Origin: Obrimoposthia wandeli
Taxonomy: Eukaryota
Direction: 5' to 3'
Assembly: GCA_977020255.1 (NCBI GenBank)
Contig: CDROCS010006440.1
Span: forward strand, 1-51,496
DNA length: 51,496 nt
Position numbers and translations under genes: made by a program. Shown one piece after another: positions 9,292 through 30,599 of the stretch. Numbering within the stretch: the first letter of the stretch is position 1; each line of letters begins with the position of its first letter. The notes beneath the pieces are model-generated. The model saw only the letters and a program-made list of their open reading frames with translations. It made no database searches and was not told the DNA's origin.

Positions 9292-9642
9292 TTATACTAG
9301 TTCAATAAATGCCATTGTTGTAGCATCACCACGACGAATTCTTGTTCTAGTAATTCTAGTATATCCACCAGTACGGTCAACGTACTTAGGAGCTATTTCG
9401 TTTACTAAAGTTTTAGTTGCTTCTTTACTTTGAAGCGCCGCGAATACTGATCTGTGAGCGTTAGAGTCATTCTTACCAGCGATTGTGATAAGTTTTTCAA
9501 CGTATCTACGTAACTCTTTAGCTTTGATAGCAGTAGTTTCAATTTTACCATGTTCTATTAACGAAATACTAAGGTTCTTAAGTAAAGCAGCACGGTGTGC
9601 GCTTGTACGACTTAGTTTACGGTATCCATGACGATGTCTCAT
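9292..9642 (-). CDS. rplQ: 50S ribosomal protein L17
   Basis: [17 protein letters not shown]. Confidence 0.99.
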
Positions 9643-9656
9643 CTATAATTCCTCTA

Positions 9657-10655
9657 TTAAGCCTGTGCGGCTTCTATTTTCTTTTTTAACGCACTAACTA
9701 CATCATCAGCAAGGTCTGCACCAACGGCAAAACCAAACTCTTGTAGTTTATCTACGATTTCATCATATGATTTTTTACCTAGGTTCTTAACATTTTTAAG
9801 ATCATTTTGACTCATTAATGCTATTTCACCTACTAGTTTAATGCTTGAGCGGTCAAGACAGTTAAAACTTCTTGCACTTAAACCTAAACTATCAATATGA
9901 GTTACTAGTTTTTTAAGATCAGGATTTTCTTCAACACGTTCTATAGTTGTTGTAGCTTTAATACTAATCTCTGAGTTAAATACAGCTAATTGAGCATACA
10001 TAACTTCTAAAGAGTTTTTAAATGCATCTAATGGAGAAATTTGACCATCAGTTTTAATATTTAAAATTACTCTTTCAAAATTAGGATTGTCTTCTACAAG
10101 AACATTCTCAATTTTGTAAGTTGCACTACGAACAGGAGTGAAGTAAGCATCTAATGCTATATATCCATCTTCTAATTCATCGTGTGTATCTTCACTAGGA
10201 ACATAACCAATACCTTGTGCAATTTTGATCACAAAGTTTAAGTTAGAATCTTCGTTAAGAGTCGCTAATGGAGCGTCTGGTGTTACCACTTCAACTTCAT
10301 CACTATTAAGGTCTGAACCTTTAATAGTACATGGACCAGCAAAACTGTAATTAATTTCTGCTTCAGAAGCTTCATCTTTAAGCTTAAAGCGAATCTCTTT
10401 AAGGTTTAGGATAAAGTCTGAAATATCTTCAAGCATACCACGCACAGAGTCAAACTCGTGCTTAGCGCCTTCGATTTTTATAGCAATTGGTGCGTAACCA
10501 ACTGAACTACTTAATAGAAAACGGCGAAGTGGATGAGCAAGAGATATAGCATAACCTGTTTCAAAAGGATATGCCATAACGTTAGCTTCATTCTCACTAA
10601 TCTGTTCTACCTCAAATTCTTGAGGAGCAAGTGGAGTAGTTTTAATTTTTTTCAT
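9657..10655 (-). CDS. rpoA: RNA polymerase alpha subunit
   Basis: [14 protein letters not shown]; alpha-[19 protein letters not shown]. Confidence 0.99.
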
Positions 10656-10678
10656 TCTCTGACGCCTTATATTAACTA

Positions 10679-11305
10679 TTATTTCGAGTAAAGTTCAACG
10701 ATTAAACGCTCTTCTACAGGTATAACAACTTCATCACGTTCAGGTATACGAGTAAAGATACCAAATACTTTGTCAGCATCGATATCAACCCATGGAGCTA
10801 AACCAGTTTGGTTAGTTAATTCCATAGCACGAACAATTTGGTTGTTTTTCTTACTTGCTTCACGAACTTCAATTTTCTGACCAGCTTTAACACGGTAAGA
10901 AGGAATATCAAGTTTTTTGCCATCTACAAGTAGGTGACCGTGAGTAACAAGTTGACGAGCGAAACGACGCGTTGAAGCGAAGCCCATTCTATAAACAACA
11001 TTATCAAGTCTGCTTTCGATTAGAGTAATAAGGTTTGTACCAGTATTACCTTCACGACGCTTAGCTTCAACGAATAGTGCGCGGAATTGCTTCTCAGAAA
11101 CACCATACATGAATTTTGCTTTTTGCTTTTCATTAAGTTGTAAACCATACTCAGAAACTTTCTTACGACGCTGACCATGTTGACCAGGACCATAAGGTCT
11201 TTTTTCTAATGCAGATTTACCCGCTAAACGACGCTCACCTTTTAAGTTAAGGCTTACTCCGAATCTTCTTTCGATTTTTTCTACTGGACCTCTATATCTT
11301 GCCAT
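10679..11305 (-). CDS. rpsD: 30S ribosomal protein S4
   Basis: [23 protein letters not shown]. Confidence 0.99.
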
Positions 11306-11316
11306 CAGTAATCTCC

Positions 11317-11709
11317 TTAAACTCTACGACGCTTAGGTGCGCGACAACCGTTGTGTGGTAATGGTGTAACATCTTTCATAAATGTAACACGAATGCCTTC
11401 GATTGCACCAACAGCTTTAACAGCTGTCTCACGACCTGAACCTGGACCTTGTACTTTAATACCAAGATCTTTAATACCATGAACCTGTGCTTTTGCTACT
11501 GCATCTTCAACAGCTGCTTGAGCCGCGAATGGAGTAGATTTTTTAGAACCCTTGAAACCAAGGCTACCAGCAGAACTCCAAGCAATCATATTACCCATTT
11601 CATCAGTAATAGTTACAAGTGTATTATTGAATGATGCAGCGATATGAACGATACCACGAGCAATATTCTTTTTTACTACTTTTTTTCTAACAGCTTTTCT
11701 TTTTGCCAT
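11317..11709 (-). CDS. rpsK: 30S ribosomal protein S11
   Basis: [20 protein letters not shown]. Confidence 0.99.
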
Positions 11710-11719
11710 CTGTTAATCC

Positions 11720-12082
11720 TTATGCCGCGCCGACAGTCTTACGTTTACCCTTACGAGTACGCGCATTTGTCTTAGTTTTTTGTCCACGACATGGAAGACC
11801 ACGACGGTGACGAAGACCTCTATATGAACCTAAATCCATAAGTGACTTAATATCCATAGCAACTTTCTTACGTAAGTCACCTTCAACCATATGGTTGGCA
11901 CGGATTTCCGCAGTAATTGCTGCTACATCTGCTTCGTTTAATTCGAAAACTCTTTTGTTATAGTCAATACCTGTCGCATCTAAAATTAGACGAGAAGCAT
12001 GTAAACCAATTCCATAGACGTATGTTAGACCATACTCTATTCTTTTCTTTTTAGGTAAATCAACACCAGATATACGAGCCAT
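11720..12082 (-). CDS. rpsM: 30S ribosomal protein S13
   Basis: [23 protein letters not shown]. Confidence 0.99.
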
Positions 12083-12084
12083 GG

Positions 12085-12198
12085 TTATCCTTGTCTCTGT
12101 TTATGTTTTTTAACTTTGCAGATTACTCTTACAATGCCTTTTCTTTTAACAACTTTACAGTCATCACACATCTTCTTTACTGAAGCACGTACTTTCAT
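12085..12198 (-). CDS. rpmJ: 50S ribosomal protein L36 (Zn-ribbon form); not in the supplied ORF track
   Basis: Translated by hand: [37 protein letters not shown]; AGGAG SD. Confidence 0.99.
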
Positions 12199-12409
12199 TG
12201 AAAGCTCCTATATTTTTCTCATAAAATCTGAACTTGTCATCTTTTATTCAGTCACTAAAGCCACACCTTAAGGTGAGCCTTAATGAGTTTTTAATTTATC
12301 TTTGCTGCATGTAGGCAAACAATATTTTTTGCTTGCCAATACTTTTATCTATATAAATAGTATATAAAGATAGAAATACTCAACTATTATGTTAAAACAG
12401 CAAAGCGGA
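12199..12409 (-). ncRNA. Candidate structured 5' leader of the alpha operon
   Basis: Nested inverted repeats whose G-U pairs work only on the minus strand; lies between a -10 element and the rpmJ SD. Confidence 0.55.
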
Positions 12410-12414
12410 CGAGG

Positions 12415-12425
12415 ATTGTACCCAA
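12415..12425 (-). promoter_or_regulatory. Alpha-operon promoter -10 region (TTGGGTACAAT) followed by a GC-rich discriminator
   Basis: Identical 11-mer lies upstream of rpsJ (47221-47231). Confidence 0.7.
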
Positions 12426-12610
12426 TTTAATGTAAAAGATTTATTAAGGGAGTTAAATTTACTAATTTAATTACACAAATAACTTATTAATAAACATAAT
12501 AAGCCCTAATTATCCTAATAAATAAAAATTACTTGAGTTTTCACTTTTATAAACATATTTAAAGTTTATGGATATAATCAAACTTGAATATAATTATTAC
12601 AGGTTTATAG

Positions 12611-13889
12611 ATGAAAAAAGTATTAATCGCTAATGATAATCAAAAAATCTTATCTTTATTAAAAATAGAGATAGAAAAACATGATGACATTGAACCATAC
12701 TTCGCTAAAAGCTATAAAGAAGCTGTGGACATTATACTTATGCAACAGGGCAAGTTCCATGGCGCTTTACTCGATATTGACTTACATGATAAAAAGATGA
12801 GGAGATAGTAGAACTCGCCAGTTTTTACAATATACCCTCTATTATAATGACAGACATTGATAACCTAGAGATACAAAACACTCTAATCAAAAATGATGTT
12901 ATAAATATAATTTCCAAAAATGACCACTCTGATCTCGTATGTGCTGTAAATGAAATGTCAAGAACATTAAAAACTATTACGATACTACTATTTTAATAGT
13001 TGATGATTCAGCTATATATAGAAAAATTTTAAAAGAGCATAGTCTAAAAAAAATAAAACTGAAAATATTAGAAGCTTCTGATGGCATTGAAGCATTAAAA
13101 ATACTACAAAGCAATAAAAATATATCTCTAATTCTCACAGATTATGACATGCCTAAGATGAATGGACTTGAGCTTACCTTTAGACTTAGAAAGCAATATA
13201 AAAAAGACCAACTTGGAATTATTGCAATCAGTGTAGTTGAAGAACAGAATGTAATAAGTAAGTTTTTAAAGATTGGTGCAAATGATTTTATAAATAAAAA
13301 ATTTACACATAATGAAATAGTAACAAGAATAAATTCAAACCTTGAACTCTTAGATCTCTTTGGACAGATAAAAGATATGGCAAATAAAGACTTTTTAACC
13401 GGTGCATATAATAGACGCTTCTTCTTTGATACAGGAAAGTATGTATATGAAAAGAGTAAAAGAAGTAAAACTTCTTTAGCCGTTGCTATGATAGATATAG
13501 ATAAGTTTAAAAATATCAATGATAGATATGGTCATAATACCGGAGATATAGCTATACAAGAAGCAAAACGAATATTAGATAATAATTTAAGAGAGTCTGA
13601 TCTTATGGCTCGTTTTGGAGGAGAAGAGTTTTGTGTACTTCTTGAAGATATCACATACGAAAATGTAAAACTACTTTTTTTTTTTGATAAGATCAAATAT
13701 AAGTTTCAGCATAACATTATTAGAACCAATCAATATACTATTACTTATACTCTGTATCTATTGGAATATGTTTTGGTTTAGTTGACTCACTTGAAGATAT
13801 GATAAGGTTATCTGATGAAGCTCTATATAGCAAAAGAAAGTGGTAGAAATAGAGTTGTGATTAATCCAAGTAGTTCTAATCCCATATAA
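12611..13889 (+). CDS. REC-REC-GGDEF diguanylate cyclase, paralogue 1; several frameshifts, span reconstructed
   Basis: LLDID; reading through shifts gives ILIVDDS and LTDYDMP; DFLTGAYNRR, RESD I-site, ARFGGEEF, C-terminal AKESGRNRV. Confidence 0.85.
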
Positions 13890-14223
13890 CACTTACTCCA
13901 TATTCTTGATTTAATTTTACATACTTGTTGTAATAAACTTTTTTACCATGCTTTTTACTTAATAACTCCAGTTCTAAAGAATCTTCTTCTAATAACTCTC
14001 TAATCTCTTTATAAGAAAGCCACTTGCCATATCTTGCTAATGCATTTTGCCATATCTTAAAATCACAAGTAGAGTTTTGGGTAAGCTCATACATCTCACC
14101 ATCTTCTGTTTTCCAGTTTGCGTTTGAACAAGCGTATAGTTTAACCTTTTTCCCGCTTACTTCTTTATCTCTCCCAACTTCAATCGATCCATCATCACAG
14201 TATGGACATTTACCTAAAATCAT
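13876..14223 (-). CDS. Small Cys-containing protein resembling a type IA topoisomerase C-terminal repeat
   Basis: CPYC...Y.CSN...C.FKIW...L.YKEIRELL pattern; GGAG SD. Confidence 0.6.
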   Translation of the reverse strand: MILGKCPYCDDGSIEVGRDKEVSGKKVKLYACSNANWKTEDGEMYELTQNSTCDFKIWQNALARYGKWLSYKEIRELLEEDSLELELLSKKHGKKVYYNKYVKLNQEYGVSVIWD

Positions 14224-14409: not shown

Positions 14410-15670
14410 ATGAAAAAAGTCTTAGTAGTTGATGATAGTCCAATAATTTTAAGTATGTTAAAAATAGAAATAGCAAAGTATAATAGAATGGAACCATACT
14501 ACGCTAAAACTTACAAAGAAGCTTTTCGTTTACTTAGAGAGCACAAGGGTAAATTTCATGCTGCTTTACTCGACCTAAATCTTCCTGATGTTCCCTCTGG
14601 AGAGATTGTAAAACTAGCAAACTCTCATGGAATACCATCAGTTGTTTTAACGGGTAAAGTAGATGAAGAAGTTCAAAAATCTCTGTTAAAAAAAGATGTA
14701 CTTAGTGTTATTTTAAAAAATGACCATGCAAGCATAAAAGTTGCAGTTGCAGATATATCAAGAACTCTTTCGAACTATGATACAACTGTTTTAATTGTTG
14801 ATGATTCTAAACTTTTTAGACAAATATTAAGAAAGAGTTTAGAAAAAATTCAATTAAATGTCATAGAAGCACGTGATGGTGAAGAAGCTTATAATATATT
14901 GCAAAATTCTAAAGAGAAAATTTCTTTAATCATTACAGACTATGAAATGCCTAAAAGAAATGGTCTAGAACTTACTTTAAAAATTAGAGAAACATATCAA
15001 AAAGATCAGCTTTCAATAATTGCTATCAGTGCAGTAGAGACAAAAGATGTCATCAGTAAGTTTTTGAAGTTTGGAGCAAATGACTTTGTTAATAAACCAT
15101 TTGAGCATACAGAAGTAGTTACTAGGGTAAATGCCAATCTAGAATTATTAGACCTATTTGGCAAGATTAGAGATATGGCGAACAAAGACTTTCTTACAGG
15201 TGCATATAACAGACGTTACTTTTTTGAGAGTGGAGAACCTATATACGCCAAAAATAAAAGAAAAGATAACACCAATGGCAGTAGCTATGATAGATATTGA
15301 TAAGTTTAAAAATATCAATGACACATATGGTCACGATATAGGTGATATAGCTATTCAAGAAATAAAAAAAATACTAGATAAAAATCTAAGAACGTCTGAT
15401 CTTATGGCACGTTTTGGAGGTGAGGAATTTTGTATACTACTTGAAGACATAACAATCCAAGATTGAGGATAAAGCAACTTTTTTGAAAAAATAAGAAAAA
15501 AGCTTTTGAAGAAAATGTATTAGATAAACGGAACAGAAATATCATATACTGTATCAACAGGTATTTATTATGGTTTTTCAACCTCACTTGATGATATGAT
15601 TAGACTTTCTGATGAAGCACTATATACAGCTAAAGAGGGTGGAAGAAACAGAGTTGAAATCAAATCATAA
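14410..15670 (+). CDS. REC-REC-GGDEF diguanylate cyclase, paralogue 2; frameshifts near 15260 and 15460-15540
   Basis: VVDDSP, LLDLNLPD, ITDYEMP, DFLTGAYNRR, RTSD I-site, ARFGGEEF, AKEGGRNRVEIKS*. Confidence 0.88.
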
Positions 15671-25871: not shown

Positions 25872-26726
25872 ATGAAACAAAGCGAATACCTAGAACTAGG
25901 TCAAATGAACACACTTTATATAGACAGACTCACAACTCCAGGCGCATACCTGACAGCACTTGATGGAAATGATGTACTTCTACCAGGACAATACCTAACT
26001 CCAGAAATGAAAGAAAGAACATTTATAGATGTATTTTTATATACTGACTCAGAAGATAGACTTGTAGCTACAACACTAACTCCAACTGCAAAACTTGATG
26101 AGATGGCACTATTTGAAGTTATAGACACTGCACCTTTTGGAGCATTTATGGACTGGGGTTTAAGTAAAGATCTCTTAGTTCCCAATATGTTTCAAAAAAC
26201 TCCTTTTAAAGTAGGTGAAAAAAGATTTATAAAAGTAATCTACGATGAGAGAGAATACCGTCTTATTTAAGGAACTGAAACTTGGTGATTTTTTGAGCAT
26301 AAGGTTAAAGGAATCAAAATAGCTGATGAAGTTAATATGTTAGTTATTGCAAAAACTCCACTTGGCTACAAATGTATTGTAGAAGACAAATACGAAGGTC
26401 TTATTTATCATAACGAAATATTTGAAAATCTAAATCTTGGTGACAAGAGAAAAGCTTATGTAAAAGGTATTAGAAAAGATGGAAATATTGATTTAAATCT
26501 TAGAAAAGCCGGTAGTAAAAAAAGTTCTGGACCTTCAGATAAAGTTCTTGAACTTTTAAAAGCAAACAATGGAATTATGCCGTACAACTATAAAAGTGAT
26601 GCAGAACTTATCAAAGATATTTTTGGTCTTAGCAAAAAAGATTTTAAACGTTCACTTACAGCCTTGCAAGATGCAGGGAAGATTGAAGTAAAAGATACTG
26701 GAATATATATAAAGGATGGAAAATAA
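25872..26726 (+). CDS. cvfB: CvfB-family S1 RNA-binding protein; frameshift near 26260-26300
   Basis: GAYL, VFLYTDSEDR, GAFMDWGL.KDLLVP, winged-helix FGLSKKDFKR. Confidence 0.88.
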
Positions 26727-29414: not shown

Positions 29415-30599
29415 TTATTTTACACCCTTTTTGTACTCAATTCTTTTTGCATAAAATAAAAAGAATATGCCTATAAACACTATTAGCGCGGTTAGATAAA
29501 GAGTTGAATTATAATTTCCGAACTTTTCTATTAGCGCCACGCTGTAAAGTGGTGCACTAACTTGTCCGATGCCATATGCAGCTGTCATAGAACCCATAAG
29601 CACTACAGGGTTTTTACCAGCTAGTTTTCCACCAAGATTCATAAACAGAGCAACCAAACCTATAAATGTACTTCCGTACAAAGCACCACTTAGTAAGTTT
29701 AAGTAGATGTTTGTACTTAGTGCCGGAATCAAGATGCCAATCACTTGTAAGGCCATAGCTAATATTATAATATTTAAACTGCCATACTTATGAGCTAATA
29801 TCATCCAGATTATGGAAGATGGTATCCCCGCTAATCCTACTATTAACCAAGCAACACTTCCATAACCACCAAGTCCCTCTAAAGAGTTTATAATATCTGG
29901 TAGAAATGTACCTTGAACAACAAAACCTGCACCAGCTGTAAAGTATGCAAGGATTAAAAGAATTACCTGTGTAGAGAATATAGACTTTGATAGTTTATGC
30001 TTGATGGCATCTAGTTTTAATACCTTATCAAAAGAGAGGATATACATACAGTATAAAGATACGACAAATGCACAAAGACTCAAAGTAAGCCAAGAATCAA
30101 CCCAACTACCGTTTTGCAGTGTATATTGGCTTATTAACTCACTAGACACTATAGCAATACCAATTCCGCTAAAGTGTATGCCCATAGCCTTTGTTTTATC
30201 CTCATAGTTTAATTTGACCATAACTAATGCTCCACCAACTATCAAAACCATAGAAGAACCAAAACCTGCGACAATTCTTGAGACTAACCATAAAGTCTCA
30301 TTATCAGTTGTTGCTAAAACTATTGTGGTGAGAACACTTAAAACAAGCCCCAGTCTAAAATACTTTACTTTGGTGTTTATATCTTTCATAAAAATAGTAA
30401 AAATAGAACCACTAAGATAACCTGCAAAATTAAAAGAAGCCAAGACTCCTGCATCTGTAATAGTTAAAAAGTCATCGAGCATAGACGGTAAAAGAGAAGT
30501 AAAAGCAAATCTTGCAACACCTACACCTACAAAAAGAGTGAGTATTCCCGCAAGTAATATTGCCGCATTATTATTTCTGTCAAATAAGTTTATATTCAT
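29415..30599 (-). CDS. YbfB/YjiJ-family MFS transporter
   Basis: G.ARFAFT.LLP.M, AS.NF.GYL.G; about 12 hydrophobic segments. Confidence 0.9.
   Translation of the reverse strand: MNINLFDRNNNAAILLAGILTLFVGVGVARFAFTSLLPSMLDDFLTITDAGVLASFNFAGYLSGSIFTIFMKDINTKVKYFRLGLVLSVLTTIVLATTDNETLWLVSRIVAGFGSSMVLIVGGALVMVKLNYEDKTKAMGIHFSGIGIAIVSSELISQYTLQNGSWVDSWLTLSLCAFVVSLYCMYILSFDKVLKLDAIKHKLSKSIFSTQVILLILAYFTAGAGFVVQGTFLPDIINSLEGLGGYGSVAWLIVGLAGIPSSIIWMILAHKYGSLNIIILAMALQVIGILIPALSTNIYLNLLSGALYGSTFIGLVALFMNLGGKLAGKNPVVLMGSMTAAYGIGQVSAPLYSVALIEKFGNYNSTLYLTALIVFIGIFFLFYAKRIEYKKGVK

Follow-up and report, generated by a model that had tools for sequence, protein, structure and literature searches.

A previously uncatalogued structured leader RNA precedes the rpmJ ribosomal-protein operon in Sulfurimonas and its relatives

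Results

The rpmJ operon of a Sulfurimonas begins with a structured leader

The ribosomal-protein operon rpmJ-rpsM-rpsK-rpsD-rpoA-rplQ of a Sulfurimonas is preceded by a conserved leader RNA of roughly 210 nt, which we confirm as a real and previously uncatalogued family of a known functional kind. The leader lies in a window of 51,496 nucleotides (contig CDROCS010006440.1), which is the whole stretch of DNA analyzed here and belongs to a Sulfurimonas. Its two domains, a core three-way junction (D1) and a second module (D2), occupy the space between the promoter and the Shine-Dalgarno (SD) sequence of rpmJ (Table 1). An initial annotation of the window had outlined a long leader at this place, and a check against the sequence found its helices and its -10 box to be correctly located.

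About 410 nt of non-coding DNA separate rpmJ from a divergent, fragmented response-regulator gene. This response-regulator/GGDEF gene is present as two tandem fragmented copies on the plus strand (12611-13781 and 14410-15466). In the first copy, a 65-aa REC-like start is followed by 210 aa that contain part of a REC domain and a GGDEF domain; in the second, a double-REC piece of 296 aa comes before a GGDEF piece of 102 aa that overlaps it. In most Sulfurimonas loci, a gene for a 114-aa protein lies directly 5' of the rpmJ promoter; its counterpart in the window has been pushed to 13876-14223 (minus strand) by these fragments and encodes a 115-aa cysteine-rich protein with a CPYC...C motif and no Pfam match. 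Across loci, the gene 5' of the leader varies (the 114-aa protein, FecR, NrdD, EF-Ts, a Y-family polymerase or, in the window, the response-regulator fragments), indicating that the D1 element travels with rpmJ. We also considered whether the leader could be a relic of infA. This was rejected, since infA is intact in the window at about 36.6 kb, where it closes a large ribosomal-protein cluster some 24 kb from rpmJ and not 5' of it, and since in genomes where infA adjoins rpmJ the leader sits between the two genes.

Table 1. Features of the rpmJ leader and its operon, in window coordinates
Feature	Position	Strand	Basis or remark
Conserved putative upstream promoter element, CTTAATAAA (12448-12440) and TTTTACA (12437-12431)	12431..12448	minus	Sulfurimonas comparison
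-10 box TACAAT	12415..12420	minus	Sequence; all type-C loci have TAYAAT at an equal distance from the core
Predicted transcription start, most likely T12409	12407..12411	minus	Analogy with C. jejuni dRNA-seq start; opens conserved (G/A)UCCGC 5' end
Domain D1, core three-way junction	12300..12409	minus	Covariance model R2 and covariation
P1, outer helix, CUUUGCUG with CAGCAAAG	12405-12398 with 12307-12300	minus	8 bp, perfect
J1/2	12397-12381	minus	D1 model
P2, long hairpin	12380-12338	minus	D1 model
P3, 9-bp hairpin	12337-12314	minus	D1 model
J3/1	12313-12308	minus	D1 model
Domain D2	12214-12288	minus	Two covarying hairpins and conserved strand AGCUUUAGUGA
H4 with extension, AAGGCUCACC-UUAA-GGUGUGGCUUU	12281-12257	minus	Sequence
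D2 hairpin H4, CUCACC-UUAA-GGUGUGG	12261..12277	minus	Covariation, 13 copies
D2 conserved strand CUUUAGUGACUGA, within the (A/G)GCUUUAGUGA signature	12248..12260	minus	Near-invariant columns in alignment A7
D2 hairpin H5, AAUAAAA...UUUUAU and distal part	12221..12247	minus	Covariation
GAGAA, 3' strand of possible closing helix H6	12216..12220	minus	Moderate support
10-codon uORF MTSSDFMRKI, judged not functional	12208..12240	minus	Ends on SD; ATG in 5' strand of H5
SD AGGAG of rpmJ	12205..12209	minus	6 nt 5' of ATG at 12198
rpmJ ATG	12198-12196	minus	Sequence
Regulated operon rpmJ-rpsM-rpsK-rpsD-rpoA-rplQ	9292..12198	minus	ORFs and Pfam
rpmJ (L36)	12085-12198	minus	ORF and Pfam
rpsM (S13)	11720-12082	minus	ORF and Pfam
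rpsK (S11)	11317-11709	minus	ORF and Pfam
rpsD (S4)	10679-11305	minus	ORF and Pfam
rpoA (RNA polymerase alpha subunit, RpoA)	9657-10655	minus	ORF and Pfam
rplQ (L17)	9292-9642	minus	ORF and Pfam

The core junction is conserved and covaries in Sulfurimonadaceae

To collect related leaders, we searched with S13, which yielded 80 Campylobacterota loci. D1 was present in all 51 Sulfurimonadaceae loci examined (44 distinct leaders), always just 5' of rpmJ, and the 5' ~110 nt of the leader are conserved in Sulfurimonas and Sulfuricurvum. These 51 loci, hereafter type C, include six metagenome contigs recovered as covariance-model matches and 30 contigs from exact look-ups of L36, every one of which carried the core. 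A pattern scan of metagenomes was too loose, with real leaders at 6 of 78 loci, and two human-gut metagenome loci (L141 and L158) were excluded from all later steps.

The outer helix and both hairpins of the junction proposed in the initial annotation are borne out by covariation among the 51 leaders. In an alignment of 31 D1 sequences (A5), 93.5% of the cells were paired, compared with 39-51% when the pairing partners were slid, and compensatory changes occurred at 13 of 29 pairs; A5 was fitted to the covariance model, and an earlier MAFFT alignment had compensatory changes at 10 of 27 pairs. Parts of the junction do not vary at all. The basal helix of P2, in which AGUAUUU pairs with AAAGUAUU and two of the pairs are G-U, is invariant, as is the UUGG joining P2 to P3. 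A covariance model of the P1-P2-P3 junction with its invariant AAAGUAUUGG (R2) matched the window at 12291-12410 on the minus strand with 107 bits (E 4e-19), the window sequence being one of the 16 R2 seeds.

The leader is structured on the minus strand and is continuous with rpmJ

The minus-strand RNA from 12409 to 12190 has a predicted folding energy of -61.6 kcal/mol, compared with -38.7 +/- 3.9 kcal/mol for 200 shuffled sequences (z -5.8), none of which was equally stable. The plus strand of the leader folds much more weakly (-40.4 kcal/mol, z -2.1), which supports the earlier argument, drawn from G-U pairs, that the minus strand is the functional one. Similarly, R2 scored no more than 15 bits on the plus strand. 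Taken with the minus-strand R2 match, the folding energies uphold the proposal that the rpmJ-rpsM-rpsK-rpsD-rpoA-rplQ mRNA has a structured leader that is in cis and specific to one strand.

A putative promoter element lies upstream of the -10 box. Within the 45 nt preceding the core, the string CTTAATAAA-N2-TTTTACA is near-identical among Sulfurimonas loci. TTTACA is only 10 nt from the rpmJ -10 box, a spacing that is not standard for a -35 element, and TTAATAAA is found before Sulfurovum rpmJ promoters as well. In C. jejuni, dRNA-seq of two strains assigned a primary transcription start site (TSS) and a 132-nt 5' UTR to rpmJ (Cj1591) (Dugar 2013, PMC3656092, supplementary file 10). At the C. 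jejuni locus in our set (L050), this mapped start lies 5-6 nt past the equivalent TACAAT. By analogy, the window transcript probably starts near 12409, about 6 nt past its TACAAT, and P1 would thus form the 5' end of the RNA. The mapped 132-nt UTR contradicts, for the family, a start close to rpmJ, which the initial annotation had named as an observation that would speak against a long leader. In the same data set, C. jejuni rpsD (Cj1594) and rplQ (Cj1596) have primary TSSs of their own, with UTRs of 50 and 213 nt, respectively (Dugar 2013, PMC3656092, supplementary file 10); internal promoters thus exist in the C. jejuni operon, and S4 synthesis is partly uncoupled there from the rpmJ leader.

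Metatranscriptome contigs of related Sulfurimonas join the leader continuously to rpmJ and rpsM. Their ends fall roughly 20-25 nt inside the predicted start, and no contig reaches across the rpmJ promoter, although, being contigs assembled from relatives rather than true 5' ends, they cannot prove a start. A terminator scan found no terminator-like site on the minus strand of the leader, whether after D1 or after D2. Accordingly, the suggestion of a separate co-transcribed non-coding RNA did not hold, as the RNA contigs continue into rpmJ and no terminator lies 3' of the structure; an attenuator was rejected for the same lack of a minus-strand terminator.

These observations also bear on the most skeptical reading, in which the structure would be a chance product of AT-rich sequence, an element of the plus strand or an independent small RNA. 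The region is indeed AT-rich (27% G+C), and its sole terminator-like hairpin lies on the plus strand (12311-12336). However, no plus-strand gene ends there, and folding energy, covariation and covariance-model scores all favor the minus strand, where a small RNA would lack a terminator and where transcription runs on into rpmJ. We therefore regard this reading as extremely improbable.

A second module occurs at several sites

An extension of 82-202 nt lies 3' of the core in 18 of the 44 distinct Sulfurimonadaceae leaders (about 40%); in most of these, that of the window among them, the extension is D2. To characterize D2, we aligned 13 copies without fitting them to a model (alignment A7). In hairpin H4, 89.7% of the cells were paired across the 13 copies and compensatory changes were seen at 4 of 6 pairs, with variants in relatives such as CUUGUC/GACAUAG and CUCGCC/GGCGAAG. 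The corresponding values for hairpin H5 were 91-92% and 8 of 12 pairs, and for both hairpins together 91% and 12 of 18 pairs. Between H4 and H5 lies a strand (AGCUUUAGUGA-CUGA) that hardly varies. A third helix, H6, which may close the module, has moderate support (72% of cells paired, compensatory changes at 4 of 8 pairs); its 5' partner could be CUCAU at 12287-12283 in the window, and in relatives it is UUCUC at the base of H4.

This comparison revises several details proposed earlier for the 3' half of the leader. The core of the AAGGCUCACC-UUAA-GGUGUGGCUUU hairpin (CUCACC/GGUGUGG) covaries, whereas its long extension, UCAUUAAGG with CUUUAGUGA, is lost in relatives. The proposed CUGAA/UUCAG stem is merely an alternative fold in the window, and the helix that covaries instead is H5. 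The 10-codon uORF has no start codon in the closest relatives (its ATG is absent in L002, L209, L231 and others). When the D2 copies were inspected by eye for a K-turn, a tRNA-like fold or an SD decoy, none of these was consistent across copies; weak Rfam matches to a C/D-box snoRNA over D2 were dismissed as chance.

The position of D2 is variable. In the window, it sits between D1 and the SD, and a third covariance model (R3) places it at three sites among the leaders: 3' of P1, within the loop that caps P3, or after P3 but ahead of the 3' strand of P1. Some leaders contain two or three copies (for example, two in L203). D2 is also found beside rpmJ in leaders of another structural type (type A, described below; L061 and L075), and a D2-like module lies directly 5' of infA in two Campylobacterales MAGs (L072:1843-1934 and L075:1620-1713; R3, E about 5e-4), where the (A/G)GCUUUAGUGA signature is present upstream of infA too. 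Three D2-like copies are present in L075: two separate the D1 core from rpmJ, and the third precedes infA. Based on these sequence comparisons, its varied sites and its occurrence before infA mark D2 as a facultative and autonomous module and not as a part that docks with D1.

Related leaders precede rpmJ in other Campylobacterota

We found a related junction before rpmJ in Sulfurovum, Campylobacter, Sulfurospirillum, Nitratifractor and further MAGs. In these type-A loci, the leader is often the infA-rpmJ spacer, with its own -10 box. In type-A leaders, P1 is short and is accompanied by a conserved GAAGAA strand; P2 and P3 are again joined by UUGG, and the P2 loop forms a 5-bp pseudoknot with sequence located 10-25 nt upstream of the SD. 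These leaders also have an extra hairpin at the extreme 5' end. In an unfitted MAFFT alignment of 37 type-A leaders, 92% of the cells were paired, compared with 73% in shuffled and about 40% in slid controls, and compensatory changes occurred at 20 of 29 pairs. The pseudoknot was 99.5% paired with GC/CG/AU exchanges. Its sequence depends on the clade (GCACC:GGUGC, CCACU:AGUGG and others), and the window type has none. A covariance model of this type (R1) recovered 50 loci at E below 1e-4, all 5' of rpmJ. The leaders of Arcobacteraceae also fold into this junction; their P1 is long, and they lack the pseudoknot.

The best non-self matches of R2 were weak and fell at exactly the orthologous spot in eight loci of the other types, and R1 gave 10.9 bits on the window over the P2-UUGG-P3 part. 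These weak cross-matches, together with the shared position and architecture, are what ties type C to the others, and they suggest that the pseudoknotted, Arcobacter-like and Sulfurimonas-like types are diverged versions of one leader. We infer that a structured leader is shared across the Campylobacterota sampled and that the window carries its Sulfurimonadaceae form. The comparison of rpmJ upstream regions from Sulfurimonas, Sulfurovum and Arcobacter, as recommended in the initial annotation, thus uncovered a phylum-wide family with covariation.

Further matches and motifs were observed along the way. The window contains another R2 match (29433-29515, plus strand; 25 bits, E 0.05) and an R1 match (26101-26226, plus strand; 17 bits, E 2), both probably due to chance. 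Among long type-A leaders of rpmJ or infA (L030, L031, L073 and L078), a hairpin with a GGGGCUUUGCC-type loop recurs, followed by AAGAA and the SD, as does a GCGUGAGCC...AGCGUAG segment.

The leader matches no catalogued family

The leader is absent from Rfam 15, a search that the initial annotation had called for. At gathering scores, there were no matches in the 51-kb window or in 18 diverse Campylobacterota loci, and permissive scans (E up to 10) of the window, L031 and L050 leaders returned noise only. The only match to Alpha_RBS (RF00140) lay at 12050-12156 with 14.8 bits (E 0.77), short of the gathering score of 38 bits. We rejected it, as it covers the 3' end of rpmJ and the start of rpsM rather than the leader and reflects coding similarity with a mismatched helix.

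Several known systems resemble the leader in organization. In E. coli, S4 represses the alpha operon via a pseudoknotted leader (PMC10931766). That leader (Alpha_RBS) lies at the 5' end of the mRNA and governs the same genes, rpsM-rpsK-rpsD-rpoA-rplQ, and the Sulfurovum and Campylobacter forms share with it a pseudoknot between a hairpin loop and downstream sequence near the ribosome binding site. However, the nested pseudoknot of E. coli includes the rpsM ribosome binding site, whereas the window structure precedes rpmJ and excludes the start codon; it is a three-way junction with no pseudoknot, at least 6-90 nt before the SD, and matches Alpha_RBS neither in sequence nor in structure. The candidate S4 leaders of Clostridia and Fusobacteriales are likewise lineage-specific and upstream of rpsM-rpsK-rpsD-rpoA-rplQ, with S4 assigned from prior knowledge only (PMC7247131). 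They belong to other phyla, and those included in Rfam 15 matched neither the window nor the 18 loci nor the three leaders. The rpsD leader of Bacillus subtilis also mediates autogenous control by S4 through 5' UTR structure, yet it serves a monocistronic rpsD elsewhere in the genome and has no pseudoknot (PMC10931766); the window leader, again, has no Rfam match.

A 2024 review states that epsilon-proteobacteria keep an E. coli-like alpha operon and names no operator (PMC10931766). Eckert and Weinberg (2020, PMC7247131) give S4 leader candidates for Bacteroidia, Clostridia, Flavobacteria and Fusobacteriales only, and none for Epsilonproteobacteria or Campylobacterota. In the literature that we searched (ribosomal-leader and structured-RNA surveys, transcriptome and motif-discovery papers), we found no description of a Campylobacterota rpmJ leader.

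Discussion

The leader is very likely a functional, conserved cis-regulatory element. It has the properties expected of a ribosomal-protein leader: it lies in the sense-strand 5' UTR of a ribosomal-protein operon, its structure covaries, and it is close to the ribosome binding site. Some 8-12 nt lie between the SD and the last domain, be it D1 or D2; the distance is about 8-10 nt from the end of P1 in short leaders and about 6-10 nt from the end of D2 in the window. Because the structure ends close to the SD of an S4-encoding operon, contains invariant junction nucleotides and is followed by no terminator, we favor, on balance, an autogenous translational operator of the rpmJ operon with S4 as the preferred ligand as the best overall explanation. 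By analogy with known systems, the ligand is probably a ribosomal protein encoded in the operon; its identification as S4 is tentative and guided solely by precedent.

Such an operator could work as follows. When an operon-made ribosomal protein exceeds the available rRNA, its free form would bind the junction; by precedent, S4 is the likeliest candidate. The bound protein would then block or trap the 30S subunit at the rpmJ start, and repression might extend to the downstream genes by translational coupling, which we propose because just 2 nt separate the stop of rpmJ from the start of rpsM.

Similarity to the S4 site on 16S rRNA gives no clear guidance on the ligand. The Sulfurovum pseudoknot GCACCG/GGUGCAA equals the base of helix 18 of E. 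coli 16S rRNA (positions 500 and 541), and GAAGAA occurs at positions 410 and 494, a resemblance that is suggestive for Sulfurovum only. The k-mer comparison is, however, unspecific, as conserved leader 6-mers match about 25 places all over E. coli 16S rRNA. Moreover, the shift of the pseudoknot sequence between clades and its absence from the window type speak against the leader being a strict mimic of the S4 site on 16S rRNA.

The same leader might instead bind S13, S11, L36 or L17, or D1 and D2 might bind two different proteins. That the leader precedes rpmJ and not rpsM or rpsD, that C. jejuni rpsD has its own TSS, that D2 is autonomous with its own covariation and conserved strand, and that the 16S comparison is unspecific would all fit. 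Nevertheless, S4 was assigned in every characterized or proposed case for this gene cluster (E. coli, and the candidates in Clostridia and Fusobacteriales), and S4 belongs to the primary rRNA binders, while S11 and L36 join late in assembly. We thus judge a different ligand to be rather unlikely. A purely S4-centered model does not predict D2 standing alone before infA in two loci, and this observation, with the separate rpsD TSS of C. jejuni, leaves room for other ligands and for a two-factor arrangement. In the latter, D1 would be the phylum-wide operator for one ribosomal protein and D2 would bind a second factor, such as a ribosomal protein or IF1. We hold such a two-input operator to be unlikely; if it were correct, D2 would have changed place repeatedly during evolution, both within the infA and rpmJ leaders and from one to the other.

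Quite improbable, in our assessment, is a leader that binds no ribosomal protein and acts as a 5'-terminal mRNA stabilizer, an RNase processing signal or a sensor of a small molecule or ion. Hairpins at the 5' terminus shield mRNAs from 5'-end-dependent decay, P1 begins within 2-4 nt of the predicted 5' end, and type-A leaders add a hairpin at their extreme 5' end. The conserved junction nucleotides and the pseudoknot recall riboswitch aptamers, and the occurrence of D2 before infA would suit a stabilizer or a sensor as well. Yet a stabilizer would need neither the invariant junction sequence (UUGG, GAAGAA and the AGUAUUU/AAAGUAUU helix) nor a covarying pseudoknot, and riboswitches serve several gene families, whereas D1 occurs in a single gene context, 5' of rpmJ, at about 130 loci. 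Direct pairing of the invariant 5' UCC with the SD was also considered and rejected, as it would amount to no more than 3 bp and there is no covariation at the fourth position.

Leaders of ribosomal-protein operons differ from lineage to lineage, and the literature that we searched describes none for Campylobacterota. The phylum includes Campylobacter jejuni as well as the sulfur-oxidizing Sulfurimonas and Sulfurovum of vents and sediments, and the family reported here provides a concrete, testable candidate operator for its alpha-type operon. Its C. jejuni member has a mapped 5' end, which makes experiments straightforward. The three structural subtypes offer a natural series for studying how one RNA-protein interaction gets rebuilt, and the relocatable D2 represents an unusual case of domain shuffling inside mRNA leaders.
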